Source: Diadema antillarum (lineage: Eukaryota). Taken from it: a stretch of DNA of 64,000 nucleotides. This document shows, piece by piece, positions 4,125 to 63,384 of this stretch. The first letter of the stretch is position 1. Each line of letters starts with the position of its first letter. A program made the position numbers and the translations under genes. The DNA is taken from NCBI RefSeq assembly GCF_040938485.1, contig NW_027270917.1:1922001-1986000 (forward strand), in the 5' to 3' direction. The notes under the pieces were generated by a model that saw only the letters and a program-made list of their open reading frames with translations, was not told the DNA's origin and did no database searches.

Positions 4125-5780
4125 ATGAATTCGATGCAGGTAAATCTTGGTACGATAATGCTTCTTGTGCTAGCGGGGGTCAGTTCTGCCGAATTTAACT
4201 ACACAACTCTGCCAAAAGACTTCTTGTTGATTTCAAATGGAAAAGTCGACACATTGCAGGTGAATCTGACAGGAGTGACGCAGCCGCTAACTGTTGAAGT
4301 TTCCAGCAGTAATACACGTATATTTACCTTGGATCAGGATGTTTTCGAACTAGATGTGGTGGCTTTGCAGACTATAGCGATTCCCGTTCGGGGAATTTCC
4401 CTTGGTATCGATGCCATTCAATTTACAGTACGTGGGAGCACTGGCTTGATCGATCCAAGATTCGATATTCAGCCCTTCGTCGTGAAAGTGAAGCGAAATG
4501 CCGGCCCCATAAACACCATCTTTACATACGTGCTGTTGATCTGGCTTATGGTAAGCTATGTTACCATGGGCGTGAAGCTGGAATGGAACCTGATACGGGG
4601 AAAGCTAAAAAGACCATTTGGCGTCGCTATCGGAGCCCTTTGCCAGTTCATCATCATGCCCGGCTGTGCGGCTCTCTTGGCCAGGGCCTTGAGACTCGAC
4701 GCCCCTACGGCTGTGGCATTGATTATCGTGGGTTCATGTCCCGGAGGATGGTTAAGTAATGTCTTCACGCTCCTTCTCGACTGCGATCTCATATTGAGTC
4801 TGACGATGACTTTTTGCTCCACCGTGATCGCCCTAGGACTCATGCCACTAAATCTTTTCATCTACGCCAGACCTTACACCAGCGGTAATAGCAGCATCCG
4901 TATACCTTTCCTCCAGATTTTCCTTCAGCTCATCACCCTGGTCGCTCCACTCTCAATCGGCACTTACGTCGCCCATCGTTACCCTAAGGCTGCAAAGTGG
5001 TTCCGTCGCCTGCTCAAACCCTTGGCTTTCATTCTCATCGTTCTTGGTTTTGCTGCAGGTTTGTGGGCAAACTACTACGCATTCGCATCTCCGGTCGAAG
5101 TCTATCTTTGCGCCATCCTTCTGCCAGTAATCGGAGCTGTCCTCGGTCTGCTTGTTTCAAAAATGACTTGTCTCTCAAACCACTCCGCCATCACAATCTG
5201 CATAGAAACAGGTGCTCAGAACGCCCTCCTGGCAACCTCTGTCATTGCTCTGTCGCTTCCGCAACCCGAAGCCGACCTTATGACTAGGGTCCCGGTATTA
5301 TTCGTCGTTATGACATTTGTTTTTCTACTCACCATGACCGGCATCTATGTCATCATGAAGCGATATCCTGGTCGATACGAATTGCCCGAACACGAAGAAA
5401 ACGGCAAAGACGTAGCCGTCAATGGAGTCGAGGCTACTACTGAATCTTCAGGAGGCGCCATCACCAGTTTGTCGGCCAGGATCCAGGGAATAGGTCCGGC
5501 GAAACTTCAGACTAAATCTCAGAGAAAAAAAGGAGCTCCGCCGAAGGGAATGTTTTCGAAGTCTACGCAGGTCGATTTCGAAGAGGTGCGACGGTCTAAC
5601 CGGGATGTTTCGTTGGTCAATTACGGTTTCGTTGCCGACTCGGGTAGATCCAACATACGACGATCTGACATTGTAAGACAGATGCGATCAAGTCAGTCGT
5701 CTATTGGTACTTTTGACTCCTTGGGAAGACCAGACGGTGTCGATGTTAGAAACCCAGCTGCGAGGCAGGTTTATTTATGA
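4125..5780 (+). CDS. SLC10-family Na+/bile-acid cotransporter-like protein A1; intronless CDS, 551 aa, signal peptide + ectodomain + long cytoplasmic tail
   Basis: Open 566-codon ORF 4080-5780. ATG 4125 (MNSMQV) is preferred because it aligns with the starts of A2/A3 (MSSMQI, MPSMQI) in the same ccaa(a)c(a/g)tcATG context. SBF motifs: CQFIIMPG, GSCPGGWLSN, DLILSLTMTFCSTVIALGLMPLNL, IETGAQNALLA. Family is clear; exact orthologue is not. Confidence 0.93.
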   Translation: MNSMQVNLGTIMLLVLAGVSSAEFNYTTLPKDFLLISNGKVDTLQVNLTGVTQPLTVEVSSSNTRIFTLDQDVFELDVVALQTIAIPVRGISLGIDAIQFTVRGSTGLIDPRFDIQPFVVKVKRNAGPINTIFTYVLLIWLMVSYVTMGVKLEWNLIRGKLKRPFGVAIGALCQFIIMPGCAALLARALRLDAPTAVALIIVGSCPGGWLSNVFTLLLDCDLILSLTMTFCSTVIALGLMPLNLFIYARPYTSGNSSIRIPFLQIFLQLITLVAPLSIGTYVAHRYPKAAKWFRRLLKPLAFILIVLGFAAGLWANYYAFASPVEVYLCAILLPVIGAVLGLLVSKMTCLSNHSAITICIETGAQNALLATSVIALSLPQPEADLMTRVPVLFVVMTFVFLLTMTGIYVIMKRYPGRYELPEHEENGKDVAVNGVEATTESSGGAITSLSARIQGIGPAKLQTKSQRKKGAPPKGMFSKSTQVDFEEVRRSNRDVSLVNYGFVADSGRSNIRRSDIVRQMRSSQSSIGTFDSLGRPDGVDVRNPAARQVYL

Positions 5781-8700
5781 GGACGTATACATGAGCATGA
5801 CAGTGTGGAGCTTACGCCTTTACACTAATGACTCTTTGAACCAACATAATTGAGAAACTCCAATCTCCTTTGCAGCTGATATCATCAATATAGCCGTGTT
5901 TCTGCAGATGATGCGCGTTTAGTGTGCATGTCTTTTTCATTGTCTCATCTCGTCATTCGTTTGTAGCAGGTTTAAAGCAAGATAAATCCATTTAAATGTG
6001 AGATCTATGCCATGCTTTCGGAAGATAAAACTTTTAGACAAAGAAATGAGTCTGATGTCATTTGGTTCATATACATCTGATATTTAGTACAACCTGCGTG
6101 CTTTGTATACTCTCACCATTCGCTTGCTCACGAGTTTTGAAAAAGTAGCATGTATAACTTAACCATTTTTTCTTTTTCCTTTCACCTAAGTACTGTGAAT
6201 ATATCTCTGATAATTTTTTATATGATTACTCATCAAGTAATTTTGTTTGGTCACGATATATTTCAAATCTATAACTGGATAATTAGGTGTGAAGTTCATA
6301 TGGCTCTATTGATATTTTGTACATGCCCTCACGTGAAATGTGTAGATTACCGCGTACGTTTTACTAAAGAAGCAGTTCACTGTCACTGGTGTTGGTATTT
6401 ATGCTGATACTTCTACTTCGCAAACAGTGACTTACATTATTTTTTTTTTTCAGGACGAATACTCAACAAATATTTCTTGTATACTGAGTCTACGAGACAG
6501 TAATAGGCAGTCTCAGTCAGAGAATACAGCTGTACTTCTTTATGGGTTATGATAACAAAGTCGTGATTGGTTGTCAAGTCACAGTGAGCTGTGTGACAAT
6601 GAGTTGGACGGTCAGCATATCCGAATCAAAGAGAATTAAATATTTTACATAACGTTTGGTTTCGCTTAACTAAATAGAATAGCATATGGTATCTTTACGC
6701 AGCGTGAGGCTTCATCTAAACCAGACTTGCGATAAGAAAGGTATATGGAATTGTACAAGTTTACATGAATGCACATCTCATTCGAATGGTATTATTTGTC
6801 TCAAGCACAACCATTCTTTTGGATTTTTGGCAAATGATGATAAAGCAGCTGTGTTTCATTTCATTTCATTTCACTTCATTTGTTTTCAATGCCAACAAAG
6901 AAACGTGTACAAAACATACCATGCCCCCCCCCACACAAAAACAAAACAAAACAAATCAAAACAAAACAAAACAAAACGAAGCAATGTACGGATTCTACAT
7001 TGCTCGAAACAATGATATAAATGCATAACAATGCATGATATTTATTAAAGAACTGTTGAAAATGGAGGGGAAGCTAAAAAGTTCCATTTCTCCCTAACAT
7101 GAAGTTTTTGCGAGATCATCACCAGCCTACAATAATTCAATCCAAAAGCTGCAATTTATTCTTATTATTGTAAGTAAAAATAAAGGAAATTTTATCATCA
7201 AACTCTGTGTACATGTTAACAGGTCAATGGTAGACAAGTGAGATGATGATTTTTATGTAATCTGTTAATTCTGACTATTCTTCATAAGACCATAAATAAT
7301 TTGTCTATCAGAGGATTGAACTAAGTGAGCATACTATCACTGAAGGTAACTGATCTGTCAGACATCCTTTATTGTCAACCATAATTCTCATCTTTAACTC
7401 TCTAATTCAATGCAGCTTCGCCAACAGATACTGTACATATAAAACTTGGAAATATAGTACCTAGCAATGTATATATAAATCTTTCCTTTTGTGACCATTA
7501 AAGGTTTAACTTATGAATATAATTCTATTCTGTCGTACAAATTTTTGTGCACTACTACTTTATCAGAATGTTTAAGATTGTCGCTCATTCTCAAACATGA
7601 TGACCGGCACATTACAAGCATATTCCAGTTACGCCGATGATTTAGAATACGAATTACTGATGTAATCTCAATAAATAATAGAACCATGTCAATAGATAAC
7701 ATGAAATCAAGAAAAGGTAATATTTTTATTACTTTTTCAATTTTATGAACTTTTTATGTTTTAATGAAACATTATCATTTGTCGCAATGGCATTTGTATG
7801 ATTAATGATACAATGGTATAATCTATATATTTTCCCACACACAAACCATCATTAAATTAAATGTAATTATGAGCGATGAATTCAATCACTTTCCGTTAAA
7901 TTACATAAGAGCAGTCCATTACTTATTGAGAAAAAGCACCGTTTTCAACACCACCTTCTCAAAGAAAAAAATGAGATAGTTAAGAGGCGATGATGAAATC
8001 ATCTCATTTATTTCACATTTGAGATTGCGATCAATCTCACTGCTCCATGACAACTTGGAAACCTTTAGAAAGTTTATAACTTTCATTCAGATTGACAGAT
8101 TTTTATGACTCTGCAAAGATAGCATACTGTGTAGCTGATCTACTTTGGTTATTCATAGTCAAGTCAAACTTGGGGAGTTATTTTACTATAGTAAGTTCTA
8201 GGAAACACAATAAAAGTCACATCGACGTTGTATAGTCTGTGCACAAGTAGTACAATCATCAATCGTCAGCCAAAATTTACTTTATTTGACGATATGTATG
8301 TTAAGATAACATTATGTATACAGAAATAAAGCATTTTTGTGTGTAGCATGATTTCTAAGCCGATATATATTTTCTTTGTATTATGGGACCACCATCCTTT
8401 AGTTAGAATCTGTTTTATGGTGGCGGTTATTTGAATAATTTTTCTCTCCCTTCGCTGTAATGTGGAAGTTCCCTTGTGATTTTGGACTGTGGTCACCATG
8501 GCAACCGATGTTACGAAAGTGGCAATTCCTGTATTGTTTTGTATCGTCTGCTTCACTTTGGTTATGGATTATTCTCTCTCTATTTGTTACGGAACGTGAA
8601 AGATAAAAATGAAATTATACCAAACTGAACCAAAACCAAACCAAAGCTATAACCAATCATTCCTGATCGGAGGGTCTTGCTCAGTGCATGACAGTGAGAT

Positions 8701-9848
8701 TACAATGAGAGAAAAGAGTTTGCGTACGTCATGAAAAATTCTAGATCAAAATGCTTCGAATGAAAATAGGGAGCGTGATGATTATGAATAATCTAAAACA
8801 CGCTTAAAATTGACAACGGAGACAGTCTTGAACAAGACAATAGTATGCTAATTTGTGTGTGTGTGTTTGTGTTTGTCTGTGTCTGAGTGAAAAAAAAATC
8901 TTGCGAGGTCATAGGCTAATTACTGATGAACACATCAGACACTAGAATAACTTTTGCTCATACAGCGCATGACTGTTTACAAAAACTGAGTAAGTCAATA
9001 TTTGACGCAGACGCCGAAAATTACGTGATAATAATGATGCACTAATTTAGCGGGGGGTGGGGTAGGGGGAAGGCGGGAGATGGGGTAGATACCGTCTTCC
9101 TAAATTACAAGCAAACATTAGAATGAATTGCTTGTTTTTAATTTGATAAGCAACACATTTTTAAGTAGGCCTATACTTCATCTGTTTTGCTGAAATCGTC
9201 TATCCTTAAATCAATCATTGGGAAATAACATATTATGACGTTGACGTTATACTAAAAGCCGACTATTGAAAGGGCCGACTTTCATAACCCTACTGTCGAT
9301 CACAATTGTTGACACAATATCCTGAAATAGCACATCGGCAAAACGTGTGATCATCGTTTTGATGCTGGAATTAATTTAGAACATGCAGTCCTTGCGACCA
9401 AAATTAGATATGACGCAAGACACCTTGAAAATAACGAATGTGCCAAACATGATTACGTAATGCATGGAAAAAATCAAACAGGGCGTGTTTGACATGTTCA
9501 CAGCGTCTTTGATTACATTTGAAAATGAGAATCAACATTATGATCTCCTAGAGTCTAGACCGCATCGAACCGACGGCAGACGAATCTGTCCTCATGAATA
9601 AAGACAGAGTAAACAAATACATGTCTTTGTGCAAATTTACATAGTCCGTCATAAGCTGGCTAACACCTTTCGCCTATTTGCCGATACTTTCTCACAAGAT
9701 AATGAGTTGCCCTCAGTGGGAGCCATCGTAGCTCACAGGACAGACGTGATTCACGGGGTCTTACCACGACGGCGCATCTTTCGTGCATGACAATGTATTT
9801 TGTACACGGACATCATGCAAATGGTACCCATGTGTTACAAATGGAGCC

Positions 9849-10315
9849 NNNNNNNNNNNNNNNNNNNNNNNNNNNNNNNNNNNNNNNNNNNNNNNNNNNN
9901 NNNNNNNNNNNNNNNNNNNNNNNNNNNNNNNNNNNNNNNNNNNNNNNNNNNNNNNNNNNNNNNNNNNNNNNNNNNNNNNNNNNNNNNNNNNNNNNNNNNN
10001 NNNNNCATAAAAAAAACAAAGAACATGTAAACATAATATGCAAGGTCCATGGTCCTATTCTGGACACATGACAGGTAATGACAGACTTATTTAAAAATAG
10101 TGAGCAAGTTGTAATAAAGTTATATGTACAACAAATTTTGGTTAATTTTTTGACAAAACTACCAGACANNNNNNNNNNNNNNNNNNNNNNNNNNNNNNNN
10201 NNNNNNNNNNNNNNNNNNNNNNNNNNNNNNNNNNNNNNNNNNNNNNNNNNNNNNNNNNNNNNNNNNNNNNNNNNNNNNNNNNNNNNNNNNNNNNNNNNNN
10301 NNNNNNNNNNNNNNN
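9849..10315. other. Two assembly gaps (N runs at about 9849-10005 and 10169-10315)
   Basis: Runs of N in the sequence. Confidence 0.97.
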
Positions 10316-11775
10316 TATATGATGGATTGGGCAGTCGGAATGGCTTTTCATAAAAGGCACGTTTTCAAACTTTATTGAACTTTGAATTTTCCGTGGAGAG
10401 GTTTTCCAGATTCATTTAACCATCAATACATCACTACGATGAAGGAATTCATTGCTACCTTGTCGACTACCGAAATTGTCTCGTGTCGATAGTACTCATA
10501 AGGCTGCGTATGAAAAACGAATATTGCAGGTCATTAAGACTTTCTTAAATGCTTCGAACCTCAACACTTATGCATAAGGCGTGAGGCCTCAGGGGTTCTT
10601 TGTCATACTTACACGGGTAAGGATGACGAGTTTTTTTTTTTCAGGTCTTACAAATGATAACCACAATGGATTTTCAACCATCAAAAAGTCTCATTTAGGA
10701 TCATTTCTTTTTTGTTTTAACTGGAATAAGTCAGATATTATTTTAAGCAAGCTCCAGATCACACGATGTTCAACTAAAATATGTTAAAGCTTCGTGCTTC
10801 ACATCGTCTCCATTGACCCTCAAGATGTAGGCGCAATGAGTGGGTCCCTGCATCGTCCTTTCCCTCCGGCTGTTGGGCACGGACCAGACAGGTTCAAACT
10901 GCACCTCAAACAAATGCAAAATTTGGCAGTCACAGCGTTTATACATGTATATGCTCATCAGCCGAATAAAGCTTGCAATGTGTATGCGATAATATTACCG
11001 TTGACCATGGCAGACAAAACTAAACGGCGGTATCATACATAGTACTTTTCTACACCTATACTGTTACTGATCAGAAGCCCATTAGTTTCTTACAAAGGCA
11101 ATTGATTGCTTAAGGTTTGGACCTTTGTCAATTACTTATTAGAATCATCCCCAACCCCCTAAAAAGTACACGCGAACTCGTTATCTACTTATCAATTCTA
11201 AATTCGCTGAAGCTTTAAATTATTTGTAATCACTGTGAAGAGTTCATGCAGAAAAACCTATACAATGTAGGCCGTGATAAATACTTGGCAGAGATTTTCG
11301 TTACCTATGGTCGGTCTATCACATATCCTCACTTTCTTCATGGTAGGTGGAACGAAAGCAGCTTAGTTCATATGACAGGAGAGTGTCAAACAAGAATGTG
11401 GGAAATCCCCGAATGCAATGACACCTTTCTGCCTATAACACAAATGCCATGCTGAGTTTACAAGCATCCAGCATCCAGTTGGAAGCACGGAAAATATAAC
11501 AAGGACACATGACTGTGCAATTGATCTTAGACTGTTAAGCTTTTGCCGTCACTTATTCAGCTGGGCTCGGACGCACGACAAGCAGAGACTGTTTAAACAT
11601 TCTCATCATTAATAATGTGTCTTACATGAAATGACAACATTTTTAAAATTTCAGTCTGGAAAGTCATAACATTTTGACATTCTTCGTAGTACTTGATGCG
11701 TTATACAATTATATAACAATCATTTGTTAATGTTTGCTACCTGATGAAATATATTTTTGTAACTTGTGCAGAAAT

Positions 11776-14700
11776 ATGGCTTCCCAAGGTGTGATGAGGA
11801 CAGTCGTCATCCTGACATCGCTGATGGTCCTATTTTCGACTGTCAGCGGTCAATGCGGCACGTCAACCTCCGTCAACATCACCTACGCCGAGGATACCGT
11901 CTATGTGTACGAGGGCTCCGAAGCCAACGTGACCTTGTTTGTCACAGAAGTCACGGAAAACGGAATTTTGACCATGCGTTCAGAAAAGCCGCGGAACTTC
12001 GATCTGGTGGACACCGACTTCAGCGAAAACCTTACGACGGGGGACATCTATCCGCGCAACATTAGTGTAACCATCGCGGGGAAGTTTATTGACATTGGTG
12101 ATCTGGAAATTCTGTTCACGACCGAGGGCGGCCAGGACGCCCTCTCCGTCGGATCTCAGACAATTGGGGTCAGGCGCGTGCCTCGCCTCATTCAGGTGGT
12201 CTATATCTGGGTGATCCTCGCTTGGGTAGTTATCAGCTACATCTCTATGGGCGGCAGTATGGACCTCAAAGCGATTTGGGAGAAGGTCCGGCGTCCATGG
12301 GGCGTCCTCATTGGCATATTCTGTCAGTTCATCATCATGCCAGCTATGACCTACGCTATTGCCATCCTTGTCACAGGTAACACCTTCATCCTTTCTGTCT
12401 TTTAGTATGTCATTCCCAAAAATCTTTGGAAACAAGAATATATTGAAATATATTCTTTAATTAATGAATCCATTTTCATATGTCTGAGATTAGAAAACCT
12501 TCGACTTCTAGCCTTTTTTTTTACTTTAGAGAAACATAATGATTATCTTTACCTTCCGACATTAAATGAACCTAACAATGGTCACTTCTATTATGAAAAT
12601 AAACTGTCAAGAGATTACAAGCAAATATTTTCCTTTCCCTATAGATGAGCCGACGGCGGCTATCGGCATCGTTCTCGTCGGCACCTGCCCAGGCGGCTGG
12701 CTCAGCAACATCTTCAGCGTCCTCCTCGACGTCGATTTCGTACTAAGTGTGACGATGACCTTCTTCTCCTCCATCATCGCCCTGGGAATGATGCCGCTGA
12801 ACCTCTTTATCTACTCGACGCCGTTCACGCGGGGAGACTCTCGGCTGAGCACGCCATACGTCGAACTCGTCCAGCAGCTCGTTATCCTTGTGCTACCCGT
12901 GTTCATTGGCATCGCCTTATCCTACAAGTTTCCAAAGCAAGTCCAAACACCACTAATAAACTAAGCACTCAGTGATTAGCTTGCGAGAATGCATTTATAT
13001 CTTCATTTCTGTATGCCTCCTAGATTTCGTAATAGACAAAGCGTAAAGTACATACAACAGGTAAAACGTGCCATCGCATATTAGTATTGGACATTAATAA
13101 CGTAGCGATGAAAGCCGTTAATTAAGATATAGTATGATGAATCTCAAGAGTTAGGTGATAATTTTTATAATCAATAGCACCGTCGAGATACACCACTAGA
13201 TAGGTCTACAAGACTTGAGATGTATGAGAGCAGTTATAATCTTCTACTCTCAGAAATATGCACGATGTTGATAGGCCCCCTTTTTGGATGAAGCCAGGTT
13301 CCCGCTATTGTAGATGGTATCTTGTAATTTTTACCTTATCCCATTTCATCGATGAGACGACACGACTTACATTCTTTTCCTCTGACACCAGCATGTAATT
13401 TCCTAGCTGCTACGCTTAAAACAGGCCAAGTAAAAGCAAAACACCAATTAGAACAACAACCCCACACAAATGAAAGAAATCACTTTAGTTACACATTTGG
13501 TTAAAGTTGTATACAGTGACGTCCTATCATTATGCATGGTAAATATAAAGTTTGCAACTTGATGTCCTTTATTTTTCCATCATCTTTAATGTCTACTCAT
13601 CTCTATTTGTTCATAAAGGTTCAAGAAATTTTGCGCCAAGGTGATCAAACCGGTGTCAGCCCTCCTCATCATAGTCGGTCTCTCGCTCGGCATCCCGGCC
13701 GATCTCTACGCCTACACAACCTCTCCTCTCAGGGTAGGTCGATCTAAATACTCAAGTCTTACTGCATGGCCCGCTGCCAAATCTTTCATAGTTATCACGG
13801 CTATCTAAAAAGATTGCAATGATGTTAAAAATATATCAATGTTTTCAGAACCGAAGAAGCACTGCGTTGCCACCATGAGTGAGATCATAGAGATTGCGGG
13901 CATTTTTATTCTTTCGTCTACATATTTGTGAATTTATTCATCTTACTTTTCTATGTTTTTCGTAATGAATCATTATATACCTATAGATCAAACCCAACTG
14001 GTTTTTTTTTTCTACTTACCTGATGTATGCAACGTTGAAACGGCAAATATAAGGGCAACAGCAGCTCTTGTAAACTAAAAGCCCTACATTTATTGTGGCT
14101 TAAATGCCGACTGTTATCAGGCTCATTAAGCCATCTTCAAATATATCATATCCTCTCCTATTCCTATCCACCCCTAGAGAGTGAAACAATAGAAAAATAT
14201 GACATGCAAGTTTGAATATGCAAAAATATGCAAATGAGACAGCTATTGAGCAGACTAAGAAGCGTGCGAATACCCGGAGGTTGCTAAATCATCTTTTTAT
14301 CTTTTTGTAGAACTGGATAGCGAGCATCATCACGCCTGCCTGTGGTGCCTTCTTCGGGCTTGCCTTCGCGCGGATCTTCGGCCGAAACGTGCGCACCTCA
14401 ATCACCATCGCTCTGGAGACCGGTGTGCAAAACGCCCTTCTCGGCCGCACCATCGTGGCGCTATTCTACCCGCAACCCGAGGCCGACCTGATTGCACGCG
14501 TCCAGCTCACCGTTGTCCTGGTAACGCTCATCGAAGGCACTCTGGCATCCATCCTCTATTCATGTTTCAGGTATGACGTCAGGGAGTTTGCTTCATGGCA
14601 GAGATATCGAGACCTGCATTGCAGCTCTTCCTGTATTTTTTGTCATCTCTTTTCGAAGTCACAATAAGACGAAGCTCATTTATCTATTTTTACATGTGCT

Positions 14701-15726
14701 CTGCTATCATTAACAATAGATCTCTCTTTCTCTCTCTCCCTCTCTCTGACACATCCTTTCAGTATAAAACATATTATAATGCGACATATCATATTTGCAT
14801 GTGTAACATACACAAGCATCAAATTAGAATACACTCGGATATATAAACTTTGAATTAGGTATATACAAGCTTTAAATTAGAATACATTCGAGCAAGCTTA
14901 GCATAATCGTTAGAGTTTTACTTTTTTTAGTTTGTTTTAGGATGAGACCACTCTAGGAAAAATAAAAGAAAATGGTCGATCGCAAACTTGATATCACTGC
15001 GTCAGCCATGGCGAGATTTATCATGATGCTCGATCGTGTGACTGTTAAAGTTTCTTCATTTCTACAATCAAAATCAACAACACTTTGGTTTTTTTTTAAC
15101 CTGATGGTGAGTTTTTAGGCTAAACAGAGTGCAATATGTTTATTTCTATGACAACAGGAACTGGCACCCCATTAGTTTTGTTGTCGCATTTGTATTTTTT
15201 TTCTCTCTCTTTCTGTTTTTTTTTAAGGGGTGTAAGTTTGAATGTATATAATCTTGAATGTTACATATTCTCTATTTTTGTTGTCAGGTTTATATTGTGT
15301 ACTTTTGCTTTGATTGCAGTTTTGTGTAATTGAATATATGTTTGTGCAATTTTTTATTTTTTCTTGCAGGGCCCCTCGGTAGAGCAATTTTGTAACTGTA
15401 AGGACTGCCCTGTTGAAATAGAACGGAAATAAATAAATAAGCGAATAAATGAATAAATAAGGATATAAATAAATACATAAATACATTATTTAATCAATTT
15501 ACTGATTAATCAATTAATAAACATTCAATCATTCAGGTACCTCATGTGTCGTAGTTGCTGCGAGAAGATGATGGCGCCAGAAGAGGACGAGAAGCAGGAA
15601 GAAGCCGCCGTGGCAGTCGATGATGTCGAACCAAAGATGAACTACGAGAGCAACGGGAATACCGGTCATCCGATGTCCGACACCCCTGGGACGGACAACC
15701 CGGGTTTCGAGCTCAAAGAAGCATGA
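11776..15726 (+). CDS. SLC10-family cotransporter-like protein B1; 5 coding exons, 485 aa
   Basis: join(11776..12376,12645..12936,13619..13733,14311..14570,15537..15726) = 1458 nt, open, ending TGA. Intron phases 1,2,0,2. Acceptors are all AG; donors are GT except intron 2, which is GC (AA|GCAAGT). Motifs: CQFIIMPA, GTCPGGWLSN, LETGVQNALLG. A 5'UTR acceptor tgcAG at 11770-11771 lies just upstream of the ATG. Confidence 0.92.
15360..15480 (+). mobile_element. Non-LTR retroelement 3' end (CR1/L2-type terminal stem-loop + A-rich tail) in B1 intron 4
   Basis: gcagggcccctcggtagagca...actg...ctgccctg followed by (AATAA)n-like repeats. The same motif ends the SINE at ~44700-44750. Confidence 0.5.
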
Positions 15727-15899
15727 GGAAATGTTGACAAATTGACTAGCTGGACATCGCCCTCACGTTTGGCCATTCTGGTGTCCACTGACAAAACTCG
15801 CTAGTTTCTGAAGACTCGCTAGTTTCTGAAGACTCTTAAAAAGTCCCGTACGCACTCATGATGGCTAGTAGTGACAGAATGTGACTATTGCAGTATTCA

Positions 15900-16255
15900 G
15901 TATATAATAGGCAGATTCAGTATTGCAGCACCACAATCCTGGAATAGTCTCTCCCCAAATATCCAATCAGCAGTTAACAGAGATCAATGAAAAAATGTTG
16001 GAAACTTATTTGCTCCAAACTTTAGACCTCAATGATAGTTTGTACTAAATTGAACTGCTGGTGATCTAACAGGTTTAAGGTCACTGTTAATTTGTTTTGT
16101 CTTGTAAATATTGTCGATATCTTGCATTTTGTTGAAATTGTTTAAGCGCTTTGAGTCTGTACACAAAAGGCACTATATAGATATTGGTTATTATCATTAT
16201 TATTATCATTATTATTATTATTATCATTATTATTATTATTATTATTATTACAATT
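15900..16255 (+). mobile_element. L2/CR1-clade LINE 3' end with (TTA)n tail
   Basis: Degenerate RT C-terminus RFSIAAPQSWNSLSPNI...KMLETYL (~15910-16015), then aagcgctttgag...ggcactatatag and a (TTA)n tail at ~16190-16250. Confidence 0.65.
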
Positions 16256-18374
16256 ATGGCAGATGACATCCAACATTAGCAAGCCGTGAGTTTAATTAAC
16301 CCCAGATTTTTAGAAAAAAAAAAAACATATTTCGCCAAATTGAACCATCAAAGCCAGTGAGAGTATCTTGAAAACTTGAACGGGTGTTTTCTTTATCACT
16401 GTTTTATGGATTCCACATTATTTTGTATGCGTGTGTCATACCAATCATAAGTTTGAATTGTTACCATGTGTGCCTGGGTTCAAGACTTTGTTTGAGTTGG
16501 ATATAGTTTGTAAGACAGTCACTGTTTGCTAAACGTTTCATCAGGTTAATTGTTGACCACTTTACCTCATTCAACGATAACTACGATATAATTCATAACC
16601 GGAAAATATGTAGATAGTGATGTGTGTGTATCTGTGTATTTGTGCTTGTTCCCTGATGTCTATGTACAATTTTTGTAGAAAAGAACGTCCAATGGCATTT
16701 TTTATACCATTAAGGTTTTTTATAACTGAGTAAACGCATCTATATCTCATTCTTGGTTTAAAAAAAAGTACCTTACTGTTACTCTACGTAGGACCTATGT
16801 TCAAAGTCGTCTTTATTACATACGTGTCAGCACCTTCATTTGTCAGAGAATAAATAAACAAGACTTTTTGTTGCACTTTATATAAAGGGCAACAGAGAAG
16901 TGTTGTTGTGTCTCATTACAGAGACCATCATTTTCAGGATACACAAAAAGCATTTCGATATGTTTTGCTCAGATTTGGGTTTTTGTATGTATTTGCTGCT
17001 TCACCCTCTAACACAAAGCGATCTGTTCGTTTGTTTGTTTGTTTTCAATCACATGACCTCCTTTGGGCTCTCATTGAATTGAATTGAATGCATCAATACC
17101 TTAAGAAGGAGGAGAACATTGATATGAATGGTCTTTCTTGTGTAGACTGATGGCATGATGCGTTCTAAATCGTACATGTGGTAACACCGGCCATTACTTT
17201 AAGAAATTATAGTTTATGAAATGATGGTTCACGAAATGCTGGGATTCGATTAAGTCCTCTTTACGTCATGACATCCTTGGACGATCCTTGGTTAATATTA
17301 GGACGCCAATTTACCTAGAGCTTCGAGTTGAATATTGTGAGATTTATTTGCTATGCCAACAGTTATGTCATAGTAGCATGTGTTAAGTAGAAACAAACGA
17401 AATCTTCCATTATCATCATGTTCATACGATTGTCAAATGCCTCTGTTGTAAAATATTACTGACGCATATATTGAAAATGTAGAGGTATGTAAAGTAGGTC
17501 GATTTTTTTTTTACAATAATGACTTCATGAGGAAGAATTGTAATAAATTATATGATGAATGTTCATCTCAGTATATCCATCAGCTCATAAAGCTTGATTT
17601 TAATGCATCTTTTATCAGATTGCCTTATGAAAAGTACAAACTAATGACAATTTTTCTTTCATATTTTGTCATTGATTTTGTATCAAGAATGCATCATCTT
17701 TCCTTCTATATAGATTAATCTATAATCAGCTCAGACATCAAATTACTCATTACGAATTAAGAATTATGCCATGATATTATTCGCATGTTCTCACATACTA
17801 GTATAGACAGCGGGGAAGGGAGTTTTATGATCTGAGAAACAATGAAAAAATAGGGGAAAAACACCAAATACATATAATGTACTGAATATTGCATTAATTA
17901 AACAATTCAAAATACTTTGAAATACGTTCCATACGCTAGAAGACTGATTGCTTGCTTACTATAATCCTACATAATACTGCACAAACCAACATTCGTAGTT
18001 ACACACGTGATACCTACGGCTAAAGACAGGGATCACCCCCATTATCCCTTCCTGGTCCTTGTAGGGTCCGCAAGAGAGGGTATTAATGCGCCTCATTTTT
18101 AGTTATCAACAACAGATGGTTAGCGGAATGCCTTGGAATGAAAGTAGGTAGTTTCTTTTTTAATCCGTTTCTGATTTATGCAATATCGTGAAAGATTATT
18201 TATTCTATTTATCTATTCACTTTGTTTTCAGTAGGGTTTTGCTCTGTCAGTGGCTACAGACAAAATAATGTGCAAGTTATCCGTTTCTTCTAGTTTCTTT
18301 TTTTTTGAACAAAAAAAAAACAAAGCACCAGTTTTCTGTAAGCTGCCCATTTCCCTGTCAATTCCTTGTCAATT

Positions 18375-18412
<38 letters not shown>

Positions 18413-19554
18413 CATTTCGCTTTGCAGTAAGGCAGGGTATGTCAGTGTCACGTCTTTTTTTCCTTTGTATTTTACGGTTGCTTAAGATTGTCTTTTCATT
18501 ACTCTGTTAAATGGTAAATCTTTCTTATTTCTATAATTTTAAAAGTGCTGTATAAATTGTATTTATCCTGTTCATGACCTTAAAAATACCCTAATGACTG
18601 AGAACCATTCGTTCGATGAACCAACATTCACACCCACAAGCACACACACTTTTTGCAGACAGTGCCTTTTTTTTACAATTAATCGAAATTTACATGATGA
18701 TGGAAAATGTCGCTAAGCACGGAGAGAAATCCCAGGTTAAAAGATTAAGATATAATAGGCCTATCAAGATGCGATTCATTTGCTTTTTGAGCAGAACAAT
18801 TAACACTTTCAATCACGATCGCAAATGTCGGCAGAACGAACTTGACTAATCTTCTGCTTAGAATTATAAACAGTGTTTCCACTAAACTATCATATGAATA
18901 TTGTTTTATAACAGGTGAATAGTTTGCATTGATTTGATGAATAACTAGTATAAACTGTGAATATAAGCACGCTTTGGTGAGTTATGTAAACTTGGTGTTT
19001 CAAGCATGTTATCATAATTCTTTCTGCAACGTGACTAGAATGTCCAGAATGCTACAAATTACTCTCTAACAAACAATCGTGGTGATTCAACTGCAAATCT
19101 GCATTGAGGATATAAACCCAGTTTGTACTAACCCCTGAATATGCTTAATAACCATGTGGTTTAATGATAAATCTGTTGAGATGATTTAGGTGTTTGTTTT
19201 TCTAGTTCAAAAGAAAGAAGAATAAATGTGAAAGGGCAATGAGGATCGCTAGCATTGCTGTAACCGTCACCTCTTTTCTTCGTCATGCCCCCCCCCCCTC
19301 TCGTTGCGTAAGGCCATGAGACCGAGGTTTTTATTATTTCCCTCCACGCTATGAATACTCAGGATAATTCTTTTAAATCAGTGAACGTTGGCAGCATTTA
19401 AATTCTATCATTAGTTGCAAATCTGCAGTGATCATCTTTCTCTACAAAAAGAAAATATGGTAGAGCCTTGAAAAGATTATGGATATTACGACAGGTAACT
19501 GTTATTCAGGACATTCAGACCAATACTCTTTAATATTTTTTGATTTGATTTGAT

Positions 19555-19770
19555 TTGATTTATTGGTTTCTGTATCATCATTGTACATATACACATTCAT
19601 GTACAAACATAAATATGATAATATATATACGTATTTTCTTGTTCATTGCCTGTGTACAATGTACAGCAAAAGTACAACAAAACATACTACAATGAATAAT
19701 ACAGAGGGGCTACAGCATAAGCGTAGCTTGATTTGCGTGCAGCCCCCGTAGCATAACATAATATAATGTA
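19555..19770 (-). mobile_element. Probable CR1-type LINE 3' end (minus strand)
   Basis: (TTTGA)n at 19549-19562 reads as a (TCAAA)n tail on the minus strand, next to a ggggct...agcccc stem-loop (19706-19748). This stretch is absent from duplicate copy 2. Confidence 0.4.
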
Positions 19771-20314
19771 CATCGGAAGGAGAATAGGAGGGAGGGATGA
19801 CTTGCATAGAGATAGGATAGTTGAAAGGAGAAAGGGAAGGGAGAGGCTTGTCTGCTTTCACTAAAGGTTTATACAAAATAAAATCACCTGTATCACTGAT
19901 TAGCAAGACATGACAAAATATTTCTTCAACGTATATCTTCGCATCGTATAAGCTTCTTCACAGGTGCTTAGATACCGTGGTAATTGGTTTCAAGAACTTG
20001 CATAGATTGATGGAGAGTGATTAAAGCCCTATAAGAGGAGGGTGATTGACTACGTAGTATTATTCATCGATAAAAGAATCAAAGTCTTCTGGTTGAAGAT
20101 TACTGAGCTACGGGAAGGACAGTGTAATATGAATAACACGTCATTGTCGCCATCAGCACTCAGCCAGTCGGTCAGTCATCGGCAGTCTCTCGGGAGGGTG
20201 AGTTATAACTAACGTCGGACCAAGCAAATGAAGCATCGCACTTCGATATCCTCTATATATGCTTCTCATATCAATAATATTCTACCGAGCTGGTGATCGA
20301 CACATCCCAACGTC

Positions 20315-24305: not shown

Positions 24306-24401
24306 AAATTGCGTCGAACGAAGAGACGTGGCGCCTGTAACAACAGAAAATAAAGAAGAACTGTTACATTGAAAACGGAGTCAGTCCTGAACCTTTATGT
24401 G

Positions 24402-24449
<48 letters not shown>

Positions 24450-46716: not shown

Positions 46717-46725
46717 TATAATATA

Positions 46726-46761
<36 letters not shown>

Positions 46762-50023: not shown

Positions 50024-53000
50024 CTATGAAATTTCGAAAGCTACGTTTGTGGCGCCATTGCGAGGCAGGACATCGTCTTCCACCGCGGTGCTGCCACCAC
50101 GCCCGTCCTTTCTCACGCCTTCTTCTCCTCCCGCAGAGATCTGCGCCAGCCTCTTACGGCACAGCCAGTACCTGTATAGGAGAGATGATATTCACATCTT
50201 CTGTTGATGTTGAGGATATAATGTGCGTGTTCCGTCTCTATGCTACCAAGAAACTTGCCTTATGAGTAAGTCTCTTACAGTGTTCGTTGTCAGTATATCA
50301 ATACCATAATGAAAAAGACACGATATCTACATGAGTGCAATATCTTGCCCCAAAGGCTTATCTAGATACAATGACAATAAAAAAAATGCTAGATAGATTA
50401 CCACAAAAGGAATCTAACCACACAGATTGTTTGATTTCTCATTGCATGTGAACACATTTTGTCACATTATAGGTTCATTTTTTTTCTTTTTCTACATCTC
50501 AACATAATGAATACTCTGAGTAACATGAATACGCACAATGTATACGTGGAAGTAAAGAAATATTAACATAAGTAATCAACATAAGTAATATGAACATATA
50601 TATTTATATATGATATACATATTTTTCTAATTTAACGACTTTATTCGGAATCTTCTGCATTGAGCATATATTACAAATGATATACAGTCATGTCTTTTTC
50701 CAACACAATTACAAGGCATACAGTGTACATCCGAACATAACTGAAGTCTATACGCATACAATGGGTTGTTAATAGACTAAAGAAAAGGAAAAGAAAAAAT
50801 TGGGAGCTGCATAGGACAATGAAACAAATGATCTGACTGAATTATGGTACATGATATATTGGGAATGTGAATGCAGAAGACTGTCGTCAAATAAGCATAT
50901 AGCTCGAAGATACGACAGCCTTGAAAGAAAAAAAAAAACGAATAAGGAAAAAGGAATAAATCGCTCACATGACTTTACCTGAAGATGGAGTAGATGAAGA
51001 CTGCGGCAGACCCTTCGCAGATGGTGACCAGGGCGATGGTGAGGATGACGCGCGCCAGGAGGTCCGCCTCGGGCTGCGGATAGAAGAGCGCTACAATGGT
51101 GAGGCCGAGAAGTCCGTTTTGGATGCCGGTCTCGAGGGCGATGGTGACAGAGGTTCGCACGTCTCGGCCGAAGATGCGGGAGACTGACAGGCCAAGGAAG
51201 GCTCCAAATCCGGGGACAACGATACTCGCCATCCAGTTCTGTCACAAGATGGGAAAGCAATGCAAATAAACAAAACAAACTTAAATTTGTTTGGCGAGCC
51301 ATCAAATTCAAATTCAATTTCAATTTCAATTTATTTTCATATTTTTCACAAATAGCACAGAAAAAAATATGATTGTACCATACGAAAATTTTACAGGGCA
51401 TGAATCAGATGAAACTTCACTGGAATATGCAACAGTTTGTCTCAGTATAAACACAAATGTCTGTATACATTAGAGTTGAGCTATGGTCATATTGCGAGAA
51501 ATATGATGGGGGCTGCGTAAAATCAAGCTTCTACAGCCGCAGGTCTCGTGTATAAGTCTCCGTAAGAACAATCATATTCAGGTAATTTTATGCCGGCAGG
51601 GCTCGACACCCAACTTCTTTACTGGTGGTCCGTTCGGGCCTATGAAAGTTTTAAATCTGAAATTTTGGTGGCCCGAAATAGATATGGTGTGGCCCGAAAT
51701 AAAAGCAAAAGTAACGATCCATTTTAAATCTTAGTTGCCCAATCGAGCCACCAAAAAGATAAATTTGATTGCCTGACACAATTTTTAAGTGACCCTTGCT
51801 AAGATGTAGAGCCCAGATATACGCATGTTTGAATAATCATTGAGCAAGTTTTGCACACTACGATCGCATGAAATGAAATGGATGAAATTTTATACACAGC
51901 AGACAACTTGTTTAAGAATAATCCCATAAACTTACCTAGGCTATATGGATACGCGGCTTTAATGCATAGATTTGATGTAGGAAAAGTTGTTGTTTTGTTA
52001 ATCTCCGAGCATGATGTGCAGATGTCTGCTTTGATATTAATCGTTAAAGAAAAGGATAACTTAACTTTATTTTTCTGATGACGCTTGATATCATATTCGG
52101 GTTTCCAGAACCAAACATCATCCTTGATTACGAACATTGCATGAGGTGTATTGCAAAGGAAGATCGAAATAGTTCATGTCAACTATTTTCTATTTCGCGA
52201 TATCCCTTAATGGCAAATTAGCAGGAAAATAGAATTGCAAATAGAGTACATATTTTGTTTTAACCATCCATTCGTCAAGAAACGTTTTCTTACATTGAAC
52301 GGCGATCGGGCGAAAGCGTAGAAGTCGCTTGGCACCGCAAGACCAATCGCAATAATAATCAGCAGGATCGCAATTGGTTTGATAACCAGTCGAGATAACT
52401 TCTTGAATCTGCAAACACATGAAAAACAAACAAACTTAAGTTATATTTCCAGATATGCTGTGGAGAAGATGCAGCTCTGGCGTACGAAATGATTAAAACG
52501 ACGAATTCAAAGAGAGGACAAAATGAATTTGAACAGACAGTCAGTTTCTTACGATTCCCTGAAAACAAATCCTGATTTTTTAAGTATGTATTTTACTTCA
52601 AAGTACTACCTTGCTCCACATCAACGAGGATTTAATGGGTGAATCATGATACTTAACATTCCAAGTAAAGGCTTGTTACTCAAAAGGATATCACACCAAA
52701 ATAATCTCATCAAGGCATCAGATATATTATATCAATACAATTAAGCATAGGAATACCACAACCCCTCAAAAGCATACGACTTGTAATATGTCACTTTGGC
52801 TGCCTCTGTGTGTCAAAATACCATCGCCTGCCATGCAAAGACTGCACTAAATGCTCGCTCTACGGATATCACACCTAAATTACCTGTTTGGACTGTTTAA
52901 ACATTTTAATATCCCTTTTTCGTCTGAATAATAATTGTATCAAATTTTCTTCGTTTGAAATCAGTGATGGAATTAAAATTTGAAAGAAGCATGAAACAGA

Positions 53001-54657
53001 ATAAGATAATTCTACATTTTTTAAAAGCATTGCTTAAGACTCCTATCTTGCACCCTTTATCATCTGTAAAAATTAGTTCATTTAAACATTTGGTGAAGAG
53101 AATAATGGACAATTACATGGCGTATCAATCTTTAAAGACAATTTGTTTCAACTATATTTCTTCTTTCTACCACGTTTTCCCGCTTCTACTATGTTTCACG
53201 GAAAATTAAATTTAGTGTTTAAACACAAGTGATAATTATGCAATGAAAATGGTTGACCTTGACACAGAATACCATTATCAGGAAAAGCAAATTGGTAGTT
53301 AGTCTCTGCATGCTTCTAAACACAGTATATTCGATGGCCAGTCTACACTTGTCATTATCAGTAAACATGGTATATAATGAAATCAACGTAAATTCAAGCA
53401 CATATTTTCCTGGGTTCATTCAATGTTTGTTCCTTATTTATATATTTTCCCCTTCATTTAGTTGAATTATTCATGTATTTCATCAAAGTACAATACATAT
53501 TGACACAGGAGAAAAAACTGAGTATTAAAGTCATCAAAGCATGGAAATGAATTACAAATGTAGGTGCAATGGCGCATGATAGGAACATAACAAAAGGCAT
53601 ATTCTCTTTTAAGGAATAACAGAACCAAGACATTCCCTCGATAACGAGGGAACAGTGTAATATGACGGAAAAAAACAAAATCACTTCATGTGAATACTAG
53701 TCGGTTTCAAGGTGAAGTGCGTCGTTGCTTTCTACGAAACAAGATTCTTTAAAACATACATAAACACTAAGTACTTAATGTCCATGGCAGTGACATGAAT
53801 TACAGATGTTTAACAGTAATTCATATTTACTTTTGAAATTTGTGAGAGAGTGCCATGCCGACGAAACAGGGAACGACGAGGTATAGGATCTGCTGGGCGA
53901 GGTCCCTGAAAGGAGTTTGCAGGCGGGAGCTGCCGGCGATGAACGGAGTCGCGTAGATGTACAGGTTCAGCGGCATCATGGCCAGGGCGAGCACGGTGGA
54001 GCAAAAGGTCATTGTGATGCTGAGAACGAGATCGACGTCGAGGAGGACGCTGAATATGTTGCTAAGCCAGCCACCAGGGCTGGTTCCCACCAGCACAATA
54101 CCAAGAGCTGTTGGAGCATCATCTCCTGGGTTTTTGTTGTTTAAATCGTCGGGAATTTTCCCAGCCAGGAATGAAGAGGATGAAGACAGCTTTGTATATA
54201 AGATTACTCCTAAGTAGGCCTATACTTTGTTTCATAAAAATTGCACTGTCTGATGACGCATAATAATTGTTAGATCGTACGACAGTCGATGACAAGTACA
54301 TTCAATGATATAATTTTGTTTCATGTGATTTACTTTACAAATCTTTACAGGTCTTACAGGTCAGATCAACCAACTATTTGATTACATATCTAACAAAAAT
54401 GATTTTCAATCCAATAGACAAACAACAAAGTTATTAGTACCATAAACAAACAGAATTCAAAATGATTACCATTGATAAGAGATTGTGCTGATATTGCTGA
54501 ATTGATTAAACTGGAAACTAAACAGGCTCCCCCCGTGCGGGGAAAAATCTACATTGTCACGCTACGCATATCGTGGGTAGTACAACACACTTATATTGTT
54601 AATTTATCAAAATATCAAGTTATGTACACTATGAGCTCCATTATTTGATATATACGT

Positions 54658-54716
<59 letters not shown>

Positions 54717-55822
54717 GTCTCGACACTAACGGTGGCCCGGTGGCCCGGGGCCACCAAAAATGAAAGTCGGGCCACCAAATTTCAAAACAGTTCAAATTTG
54801 GTGGCCCTCCTTGGGCCCTCAACATTTTTTGAAAAGTAGGGGCCTATGTCAATAAATTCGTAACTTTTTGTGCCGGAAATGCATAAATGCATGCAGTGAG
54901 TGTGTCATTGATTAAAGGAAAAAAAAAAGGACTTTTAATGTTTTTTATTGGGTTTTTTTCGGGCCACCAAAAATTTGAAATTGAAGATAGGTAGTTAGTG
55001 TGGAGCCCTGATATATATATATATATATATATGATATACGTATCACCGTGAAATCGGCAATGTGCAGGATACCTATTGCTCGGGATATAATTCTGCATTT
55101 CAAATAATCTCAATTACTATCAAATAGAACTGTTTTATGACATATCACCATGACAACGTAACATTTCTCATTGCTTTCGTAAAATTATGTGACTTCTTTT
55201 GCCGGTGTGCCTGATACGTACTTGCCAGAAGGAGAGCGATGACGAAAGTCGATGCCGGCATAATGACGAACTGGCAGACGAGCCCGATTAGTATTCCCCA
55301 CGGACGACGAACTCGCCGCCAAATGTCGCCGACCTCCATGCCTCCTCCCATCGAGAGGTAGCTCAGAATGAGCCATATCAGCAGCACGTAGACATAGATC
55401 TGTCGGATAAGCGTCGGCACACGTTTCACGCCGATCTTCTGCGAGCCTACCATCACGGCTCGCCCGTCGCCATCGACGTCGAACAGGACGTCAAGTGTCG
55501 CCAGTGAAATGAACTTGCCCTCGATCGTCACCGTCACGTTCATGGGGAAATCATCGCTCCGTGACAAGGGAATGATGGTGTTGGTTTCCTTTAGAATGAA
55601 ATCACTGACGCTCGATGACCGGAAAGTTAGAACGCCGTCTTCTATGATGCCGTGAACGGTTACGGTCACGTTGGCTTCATGCCCTTCGAAGACATAGACA
55701 GTGTCTTCAATGTAGGAGATGTTAACCGCACTTGCTGCACCGCTCTGTGCATGAACACCTCCCCCAAAGACGAGCAAGAGGATCAGTGCAGCTTCAAGGA
55801 TACTGTTTTCCAATGGCACCAT
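50024..55822 (-). CDS. SLC10-family cotransporter-like protein B2; 5 coding exons, 472 aa
   Basis: complement(join(50024..50171,50979..51238,52294..52408,53831..54125,55222..55822)) = 1419 nt, open. All introns GT-AG, with phases identical to B1; exon lengths 601/295/115/260/148 vs 601/292/115/260/190. Motifs GTSPGGWLSN and LETGIQNGLLG; C-terminus ...GATNVAFEIS*. Confidence 0.92.
51597..51816. mobile_element. Diverged relative of the 54714 MITE, in B2 intron 3
   Basis: Starts cagggctcgacac and contains ggtggcccg repeats. The right end is degenerate (tgtagagcccag) and no TSD is visible. Confidence 0.35.
54714..55010. mobile_element. hAT-like MITE inside (TA)n, in B2 intron 1
   Basis: TIRs CAGG(T/G)CTC(G/C)ACACTAAC match 15/17. 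Internal GGTGGCCCG/GGGCCACC repeats. The TSD cannot be resolved within the TA repeat. Confidence 0.7.
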
Positions 55823-60439: not shown

Positions 60440-60481
<42 letters not shown>

Positions 60482-61772: not shown

Positions 61773-63384
61773 ATGACGACTCGATTATCTTTTACCATCG
61801 TGACAATCTTCCTAGTCGTGATCGCCCTTTTACCAACTACGACCCGTGGGCAATGTGACAGTGATGGGTTGGTAAATATCACCTACTTCGAAGACACTGT
61901 GTACGTATTCGAGGGCGAGGAGATAAACGTCACGATTTTGGTTAACGATGTGAAAACGGACGGCAGACTCTCCTTTTCGGCACAAAATGATGGCTACTTT
62001 GAGGTGGTTGTCGACCGAGATTACCAGGTCGAGACCTCGGATGATTTTGAACCGTTCAACATAACGGTGCCCTTGCTGGGTAAGGCGATCTCCATCAGCG
62101 ATCTCCTTATCGAGTTCCGGACGACTCCGGACGTCAGCACACCCTTACTAGTTGGTGCGCAGACGATTGGGGTCAAGCGAGTGCCCGTGATATTGCAGAC
62201 GATCTACATCTACGTGCTGATGGCGTGGGTAGTCCTCAGCTACCTGTCCATGGGCGGGAGCATGGACGTCCCAGCGATCTGGCAGCGAGTGCGCAGACCA
62301 TGGGGCGTCATCATTGGAATCTTTTCCCAGTTCATCGTGATGCCAGCAATGACTTACTTCATAGCAAGGCTGTTGCCAGGTATAGAGTGACAAGCAGCAT
62401 CTATACAGTGTACTATGACAACTAAAGCGTATGTGTATGTGTGCGTGTGTGTGTGTTTATGGCGGGTGTGCTCGGATAATTGTTTTTGAATCGCATATTA
62501 TGATAACAGTATTATGATTCTGCTGGCGAGAAAAAGAAAACACACTCAACATACCCACGGCAATGAAAGTAGCAATGACACATACTTCCTGTCATCTCCA
62601 AGAAATAATAATTAAGAGTATTCATTCCATTACTAATAATCATCGCAGCATCACCTACTTCCCAGCTAGTTCTGACATTTGCCACCAATGAAGAAGGTAC
62701 TAAAATTACTGGTCATGATTATCATGGCAATAGTAGAAATTGTTATGATGATAATGATGATGAATTACTCTGTCCATCAAAAATGTTCAGATGCACAACT
62801 AATATGTCCCGAGGACCATCGTGCCAGATCTTAAAAGCATTATCACATAACCATCACGATATGAAGCACGATATGAAGTTGTCCAAAGGCATACAACTTT
62901 CCTTCGTTTAGGTATTCTTTAAAAATAATTATTGTCAGATACTTGTCTTCGAATACCAGGCACTTTTCACAAGTTAAACCCATCAGCAGTAAGAACTTGT
63001 CATCAGCTATCATTAGTTGCAGAAATATCACGCAAGCAACTCTTCAGTCATCAGTGACGACGGATTTTGTGATTGTTTTACCCACCCAGGCGATGATGCC
63101 AGCATAGCCATCGGCATCGTGCTTGTCGGCACCTGTCCTGGAGGCTGGCTCAGCAACATCTTCAGCGTCCTCCTCGACGTCGATTTCATCCTGAGCGTGA
63201 CGATGACGTTCTTCTCCTCCATCATCGCCTTGGGAATGATGCCGCTCAACCTCTTCATCTACTCCACGCCGTTCACGGACGAAAACTCTCGCCTGAGTAC
63301 TCCGTACCAAGACTTGGCGATTCAGCTCATCCTCCTGATCATACCGTGCTTTCTCGGGATAGGAATATCGTATAAATATCCAAA
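61773..63384 (+). CDS. SLC10-family cotransporter-like protein B3; coding exons 1-2, gene continues beyond the window
   Basis: join(61773..62379,63090..63384), with GT-AG sites and phases 1 and 2 as in B1/B2. Signal peptide MTTRLSFTIVTIFLVVIALLPTTTRG; motif GTCPGGWLSN. 5'UTR acceptor at 61743-61744. Confidence 0.9.

Follow-up and report, generated by a model that had tools for sequence, protein, structure and literature searches.

The window examined here is a 64,000-nt stretch of the genome of the sea urchin Diadema antillarum (RefSeq assembly GCF_040938485.1, contig NW_027270917.1, positions 1,922,001 to 1,986,000 of the forward strand), and it carries a tandem cluster of six SLC10 transporter genes, named g1 to g6. 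With a probability that we put at about 0.8, the cluster combines two old echinoderm subfamilies, A (g1, g3, and g4) and B (g2, g5, and g6), that would encode sodium-coupled carriers, and its type A members were recently duplicated with loss of the cytoplasmic tail. Each protein would be type I-like, composed of a cleavable signal peptide, one glycosylated Ig-like (immunoglobulin-like) β-sandwich ectodomain, an NTCP-like nine-helix core, and a cytoplasmic tail; the cleavage of the signal peptide and the outside-facing, glycosylated state of the ectodomain are predictions made from the sequences. The genes are real members of a known transporter family and an ordinary part of an echinoderm-wide expansion, and they are already present in RefSeq, under the name "ileal sodium/bile acid cotransporter-like."

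The list of open reading frames (ORFs) contains three long single ORFs, at 4125–5780, 20315–21664, and 34970–36322, and three others, starting at 11734, 55822 (minus strand), and 61755, that stop at about 200 codons. The Pfam SBF domain (PF01758) is matched at all six loci: the single-ORF genes g1, g3, and g4 reach 118–121 bits (E 6e-35, for g1, to 7e-34) and the first exons of g2, g5, and g6 give E values of 2e-9 to 8e-5. Against the curated cut-off of 24.3 bits, exon 1 yields 29 bits in g2 and 38 bits in g5, and exon 1 of g6 alone scores 22.8 bits, just below it, its further exons matching too. A tblastn search of the window with an intronless protein and with P0036, the 497-aa RefSeq protein of g6, finds exactly six SBF loci, which agrees with the six paralogs proposed in the first-pass annotation of this DNA, as does the count of five complete models (g1–g5) with a sixth running past the window (two exons of g6).

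The type A genes are intronless and lie on the plus strand: g1 (4125–5780, 551 aa), g3 (20315–21664, 449 aa, tail-less), and g4 (34970–36322, 450 aa, tail-less, ending at the same TAG as g3). The type B genes have five exons, modeled by listing the candidate GT/AG pairs and ranking them by their fit to P0036; all splice sites in the models are GT/AG. On the plus strand, g2 (11776–15726, 484 aa) begins with a GT/AG-modeled exon 1 that encodes the signal peptide, the ectodomain, transmembrane helix 1 (TM1), and part of TM2 (11776–12376), followed by exons 2 to 5, each placed by tblastn and the spliced model: 12645–12940, 13626–13733, 14311–14570 (with the ETGVQN and PQPEADL motifs), and 15537–15726 (the cytoplasmic tail with an N-P-G-F motif, and the stop codon). 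The boundaries of intron 2 are the least certain part of this model. On the minus strand, g5 (55822–50024, 472 aa) consists of exon 1 at 55222–55822 (ORF and spliced model), exon 2 at 53831–54125 (spliced model), exons 3 and 4 at 52294–52408 and 50979–51238 (tblastn and spliced model), and exon 5 with the stop codon at 50024–50171 (spliced model). Exons 1 and 2 of g6, at 61773–62381 and 63086–63385 on the plus strand, match residues 1–203 and 202–301 of P0036 at 100%, and exons 3–5 fall in the assembly gap at 63759–63887, 374 nt past exon 2, or beyond the end of the window. The other gaps lie between g1 and g2 (9849–10005 and 10169–10315) and between g4 and g5 (41302–41441), and none of the four interrupts a placed coding exon. 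The gene order is upheld independently by the other haplotype of the assembly (contig C1316) and by Diadema setosum, whose annotated orthologs of g2 and g5 (485 and 471 aa) are close in length to the present models.

The best solved relatives of g1 are the structures of NTCP, with residues 118–402 of g1 aligned to residues 9–297 of NTCP (E 3e-36). An AlphaFold (AF2) model of g1 residues 1–440, built on a 38-sequence alignment, has a mean predicted local distance difference test score (pLDDT) of 84.9 and shows a weakly supported helix (residues 2–16), nine β-strands between residues 25 and 123, and nine membrane helices, of which TM3 (193–204 and 209–217) and TM8 (352–363 and 367–377) are broken. 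The layout of g1 is as follows: a predicted signal peptide (about residues 1–22), a β-sandwich ectodomain (25–123), a nine-TM SBF core (128–413), and a long cytoplasmic tail that ends in QVYL and aligns with the tails of the Lytechinus and Strongylocentrotus orthologs. When this model is searched with Foldseek, NTCP comes first (E 3.5e-16, TM-score 0.75–0.83 by NTCP length, 27–29% identity) and bacterial ASBT next. The predicted structure thus agrees with the SLC10 fold, which is defined by panel and core domains and by crossing discontinuous helices (TM3 and TM8 in the nine-TM eukaryotic form).

The sodium sites of NTCP are made up of S105, N106, T123, and E257 (Na1) and of Q68 and Q261 (Na2) (PMC9242856). 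Their equivalents in g1 are Ser211, Asn212, Thr229, and Glu361, and Gln174 and Gln365, respectively; across 38 family members the equivalents of Q68, S105, N106, E257, and Q261 do not vary, that of T123 shows at least 90% conservation, and all six window genes carry the sodium-site residues. Membership in SLC10, as first proposed, is therefore backed by the SBF profile, the NTCP sequence match, the NTCP-like predicted fold, and the intact sodium sites. The likeness to NTCP/SLC10A1, and also to ASBT and SOAT, extends over the full nine-helix core with its unwound TM3 and TM8, and includes all Na1 and Na2 side chains and a topology with the N terminus outside and the C terminus inside. The urchin proteins differ from NTCP by carrying PGGW for PGGN and QNALL for QNVQL and by the addition of a signal peptide and a β-sandwich of about 100 residues, where the N terminus of NTCP is short and unstructured. 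Among the vertebrate members, SLC10A1, SLC10A2, and SLC10A6 are characterized, and as of 2021 the orphans comprised SLC10A3, A4, A5, and A7 (PMC8165160); SLC10A5 has since been linked to bile-acid uptake (PMC11737122). The urchin genes most likely encode sodium-coupled carriers of amphipathic organic anions with an elevator-type mechanism of the NTCP/ASBT kind; that sulfated sterols or saponins are among the substrates is a guess.

The N termini of all six proteins display a hydrophobic stretch of 12–17 residues that ends in small residues at −3 and −1 of a putative cleavage site (SSA|E, VSG|Q, VHA|Q, and TRG|Q), and then about 100 residues with one to four N-x-S/T sequons, in keeping with the signal peptide and ectodomain first ascribed to all six. 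The V-K/R-R motif noted before the SBF core is likewise present, at residue 122 in the A genes and at residues 132–134 in the B genes. The PQPEADL motif, said to occur in the five complete genes, is found in four of them, whereas g3 reads SQPEADL; with g6, where it lies outside the window and was read in P0036, five of the six genes carry it. V-K/R-R was considered as a proprotein-convertase site and rejected as a family feature, the basic pair being absent in many members: in the 38-member alignment the consensus is VKVxRxP, and L, I, N, or V often precedes R. In the g1 model this segment is the last strand of the sandwich, 3–4 residues before TM1, and we read it as a structural junction rather than a cleavage site. 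The last ectodomain strand (VKVxR) would then continue straight into TM1 of a core in which both sodium sites are intact.

When modeled alone, the g1 ectodomain is confidently predicted as an all-β domain of nine strands, with a pLDDT of 92.5. Its fold is that of a generic Ig-like sandwich, best matched by PapD/MSP domains, macroglobulin MG domains, and Pom152 Ig-like repeats (TM-scores of 0.5–0.66), and the Atlas fold search agrees; the feature-based search of the ESM Atlas gave no usable match for the ectodomain. The fold matches include cystinosin as well as a PQ-loop cluster from arthropods that has a β-sandwich at the N terminus, an independent case of a sandwich placed before a small carrier. 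Cystinosin has, like the urchin proteins, a signal peptide, a glycosylated (luminal) β-sandwich, and then a small-molecule carrier, here a seven-TM PQ-loop domain, but the membrane domains are unrelated and the comparison is an analogy only.

A profile built from 37 ectodomains and searched against 1.84 billion representative sequences gave 173 matches, which form four groups: echinoderm SBF proteins matched once, at the N terminus; echinoderm proteins named by NCBI "sodium/bile acid cotransporter 5(-like)," for example D. antillarum P0079 (residues 140–249, E 8.6e-10), whose gene is single-copy in all five echinoderm classes; the SLC10 protein P0140 of the brachiopod Lingula (residues 22–136, E 1.8e-5); and long bacterial proteins packed with Big_2 repeats. 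The matches in the N-terminal domains of echinoderm SLC10A5-like and Lingula SLC10 proteins indicate that the combination of ectodomain and core is older than the echinoderms. With Big_2 (PF02368), as with the other Ig-like sandwiches (PapD/MSP and macroglobulin MG), the urchin domain shares the fold; with Big_2 it also shares a weak pattern, S-x-D/N-x-x-hydrophobic-F-x-V ... G-x-x-x-G-I, and its profile meets many Big_2 repeat proteins. The urchin proteins differ in carrying one copy, fused to a transporter, and the per-domain scores are weak, Pfam Big_2 meeting one family member at E 0.085.

The ectodomain-plus-core architecture is plausibly of the SLC10A3/A5 type: SLC10A3 (P3) and SLC10A5 (P5) also have a long N-terminal extracellular extension ahead of the SBF core, and the likeness to this type proposed at first gains from the profile match to the N-domain of the "cotransporter 5-like" proteins. 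Vertebrate SLC10A3 and SLC10A5 have one coding exon, like type A; within the cluster, this structure is shared by g1, g3, and g4, and five exons make up g2, g5, and g6. The window genes differ in belonging to a separate, echinoderm-only clade. In trees obtained by IQ-TREE quick search with SH-aLRT (Shimodaira–Hasegawa-like approximate likelihood ratio test) support, which include no vertebrate sequences, the window genes are not orthologs of the echinoderm clade named SLC10A5(-like).

In these trees A and B fall within one echinoderm-only clade (99% SH-aLRT), which excludes the echinoderm SLC10A5-like clade, Lingula, and two short SLC10s of Diadema. The two types are old echinoderm subfamilies; identity between them is about 40% for the core and about 20% for the ectodomain. 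The A genes form the arrangement (g1, (g3, g4)), beside one ortholog each in Lytechinus variegatus and Strongylocentrotus purpuratus; the group around them (96%) also includes sequences from ophiuroids and holothurians. The arrangement of the B genes is (g5, ((g2, L. pictus P0038), (g6, (L. pictus P0035, S. purpuratus P0037)))), a topology which implies that the split between g2 and g6 predates the divergence of Diadema and the camarodonts. The A ortholog of L. variegatus consists of one exon of 1,710 nt and is followed on the same strand, about 4.5 kb downstream, by the start of the g2 ortholog, so that both the A-then-B order and the lack of introns in A are old. The "lineage-specific expansion" first suggested thus holds in that the clade is echinoderm-only and that g1, g3, and g4 arose in the Diadema lineage, but not for the cluster as a whole: the clade is old and genome-wide, g2 and g6 have their own Lytechinus and Strongylocentrotus orthologs, and the A-then-B order is shared with Lytechinus. 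Nor do the genes separate in the trees into orthogroups that are single-copy across bilaterians.

In L. variegatus (CM031016.1:49815379-49837088), an annotated 490-aa SBF gene (4012–20691 of this region) encloses the intronless A ortholog (10001–11710), which reflects either a 5′ exon upstream of the A gene, hence nested genes, or the joining of two genes in the annotation; the ectodomain part of the g2 ortholog lies there in two pieces, 16189–16473 and 17082–17363. The S. purpuratus A ortholog is also present on a Logan contig of 2.1 kb, which has no poly(A) and could derive from either RNA or DNA. For window 11700–21699, the sequencing runs listed include none of RNA.

A sensitive blastn search aligns g1 (4066–5784) with 20260–21961, beyond the end of the g3 frame. 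At the position of codon 450 of g1 (TCG), g3 and g4 both have TAG, and this shared stop codon removes from both a conserved tail of 101 residues; past the g3 stop, a decayed, frame-shifted remnant of the tail-coding sequence is found by frame alignment at 21665–21961 (plus strand). The lost residues hold motifs kept in the Lytechinus and Strongylocentrotus orthologs: MFSKSTQVD-EE-RRS, N-x-x-F/Y, and a terminal QVY-L/I. Self-comparison reveals a tandem unit of about 14.7 kb, composed of g3 and downstream DNA, whose first copy spans 19988–34648 (plus strand; blocks of 74–89% identity) and whose second copy starts at 34649, with collinear blocks traced to 41237. Truncation of g3 and g4 by a duplication breakpoint, an impression given by megablast, was rejected once the sensitive search had found the tail remnant and the shared nonsense codon. 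That g4 is an assembly duplicate of g3 was also rejected, as the two differ by about 7.5% in coding sequence and by 11–32% across aligned flank blocks, and as the D. setosum copy groups with g4. The synonymous divergence (dS) is 0.27–0.32 between g1 and g3 or g4, with a nonsynonymous-to-synonymous ratio (dN/dS) of 0.30–0.34 (0.30 for g1 and g3), and 0.15 between g3 and g4, with a dN/dS of 0.38; the ratios are alike in ectodomain and core. The A copies are under purifying selection.

In the history that we propose, type A is the lineage with a single coding exon and one ortholog in Lytechinus and Strongylocentrotus, and type B the five-exon lineage; both belong to an echinoderm-only radiation apart from the single-copy "SLC10A5-like" gene, the latter and the brachiopod SLC10 bearing the same kind of N-domain. 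In Diadema, g1 would have been duplicated, one copy would have gained the stop codon that cuts off 101 tail residues, and this tail-less copy would have been duplicated again as the 14.7-kb tandem unit to yield g3 and g4, whose trafficking may be altered.

The copy number of g3/g4 is unstable: this haplotype has two copies, the other a chimera, and D. setosum a single copy. On C1316, a single g3/g4 chimera leaves five genes; it resembles g3 (98.4%) through the upstream flank and as far as about 21442, and it resembles g4 from about 21608 onward, including the downstream flank. Such a sharp switch, close to the 3′ end of the coding sequence, is a hallmark of unequal crossing-over. The single copy on C1316 was considered as the ancestral state and rejected, the chimera being an unequal-crossover deletion. 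D. setosum has one 450-aa A copy between its g2 and g5 orthologs; it groups with g4 (94/96 support; 24 versus 7 shared derived sites), and the g3/g4 duplication therefore goes back roughly as far as the species split, or further. The other haplotype also carries intact copies of g2 and g5; the g2 exons are each 96–100% identical in D. setosum. Between C1316:198300-203200 and window 11357–16431, the haplotypes differ by 5–13%, with indels, in g2 introns and flanks; the g2 exons are 90–100% identical in protein, and the g1 region is 99.4% identical. Two repeats lie elsewhere in the window: a tandem array at 41827–43050, just past the gap at 41302–41441 (units of 234–253 bp, about 3.5 copies, 88–89% matches), and a 136-bp repeat at 31789–32158.

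A six-frame scan of the D. antillarum assembly (1.75 Gb, 2,963 contigs) with the SBF profile gave 107 matches, which pair up with identical scores across the assembly, so that it evidently contains both haplotypes. Grouped by eye, they correspond in each haplotype to about 12 loci with one exon and about two dozen with several, some 35 in total as a rough lower bound, and many further Diadema loci of the family consist of one open frame and share this N-terminal layout. In the literature collection that was searched, no paper on an SLC10 expansion in echinoderms was found, and the cluster is part of a large and apparently undescribed radiation of SLC10s with ectodomains in echinoderms. Another tandem array, larger than the present one and made up of about seven multi-exon SBF genes, is seen at C7:2128632-2212484 and C552:716709-798284, apparently two haplotypes; its exon pattern differs (the profile is split near position 91), and it probably represents another SLC10 subfamily. 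At C36:381200-385200 and C295:555000-559000, a family member with the core has its first Met at 177–185 of the frame and ends early; there is no start codon before the ectodomain region, and the locus is a gene with introns or else a copy in decay. Across echinoderm classes, most members keep an N-P/x-x-F/Y motif near the C terminus (HVNPVFD; TDNPGFE in g2), and the A-type group ends in Y-V/I/L. These elements, absent from g3 and g4, look like sorting or PDZ-type signals.

Several points weigh against our reading. None of the six window genes matches the Pfam N-domain PF24690 (NTCP5_P3_N), nor do the echinoderm "cotransporter 5-like" proteins; among family members it is met by P0027, at E 4.9e-5 and 23.9 bits, below the 27-bit cut-off, and the suggested link to vertebrate SLC10A3/A5 comes from this sub-threshold match and an NCBI gene name. 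A PF24690 scan of the Diadema genome found nothing and is uninformative, its controls being silent too. The structure was predicted for g1 alone, the trees come from a quick search and their deep branches are poorly resolved, and signal-peptide cleavage was judged solely by the length of the stretch and the −3/−1 rule. The last point leaves room for a different topology, in which the N-terminal stretch stays uncleaved and adds a tenth membrane helix, the arrangement of bacterial ASBT and SLC10A7, and the β-sandwich forms an extracellular loop. The predicted nature of the cleavage, the lack of a positive charge in the g1 n-region, and the helix that AlphaFold draws at residues 2–16 would fit this, but that helix has low confidence (pLDDT 57–63), the hydrophobic core is just 12–17 residues long, small residues stand at −3 and −1 in all six genes, and the sequence of the segment is not conserved across the family, so that a retained tenth helix appears quite unlikely. 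It is more improbable still that the proteins act chiefly as receptors or sensors through the ectodomain and not as carriers. Ig-like domains are common binding modules and NTCP itself serves as a virus receptor (PMC9242856), yet the sodium-site residues and core motifs are invariant across the 38 members and the constraint on the core equals that on the ectodomain.

The type A genes raise two further alternatives to old, functional copies. Their lack of introns and their interleaving with the B genes could suggest recent retrocopies of the adjacent five-exon genes; this is hardly credible given the low A/B identity in core and ectodomain, the separation of A and B among echinoderm-class-level clades with A not nested in B, and the Lytechinus A ortholog, which is also intronless and also upstream of a g2 ortholog. 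Moreover, at least nine other Diadema family loci and the SLC10A5-like gene are single open frames; together with the intronless Lytechinus ortholog, they make it likelier that the single coding exon is old or ancestral. The phylogenetic nesting of a processed retrogene within an intron-bearing parent was not found; poly(A) and target-site duplications, unlikely to survive at such an age, were not searched for. A somewhat more serious contender, which we still consider unlikely, is that g3 and g4 are dying copies, disabled by their shared stop and persisting by chance. The tail they miss is shared in conserved form by Diadema g1 and the Lytechinus and Strongylocentrotus orthologs, their copy number varies between haplotypes and species, and g3 has a long branch (43 private changes versus 16 for g4 at polarized sites) and has lost the P of PQPEADL. 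Against this, the frames of 449 and 450 codons are still open at a dS of 0.15–0.32 with a dN/dS of 0.30–0.38, the D. setosum ortholog retains the same 450-aa frame, and the sodium-site residues are intact.

A broader and speculative proposal, which we regard as rather doubtful, is that the phylum-specific radiation, with dozens of loci per genome and two of its old subfamilies in this cluster, has diversified its ectodomains and pockets and handles the phylum's own sulfated sterols, saponins, or other amphipathic anions, that the ectodomain captures ligands or binds partners, and that tail loss yields differently trafficked isoforms. Echinoderms are not known to make vertebrate-type bile acids, which makes the cargo of their SLC10 proteins a matter for comparative physiology. 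In this family the poorly understood SLC10A3/A5-type architecture, with its ectodomain ahead of an NTCP-like core, occurs in many natural variants, including tail-less forms and a copy-number polymorphism, and these variants could help to work out the roles of the N-terminal domain and of the tail.

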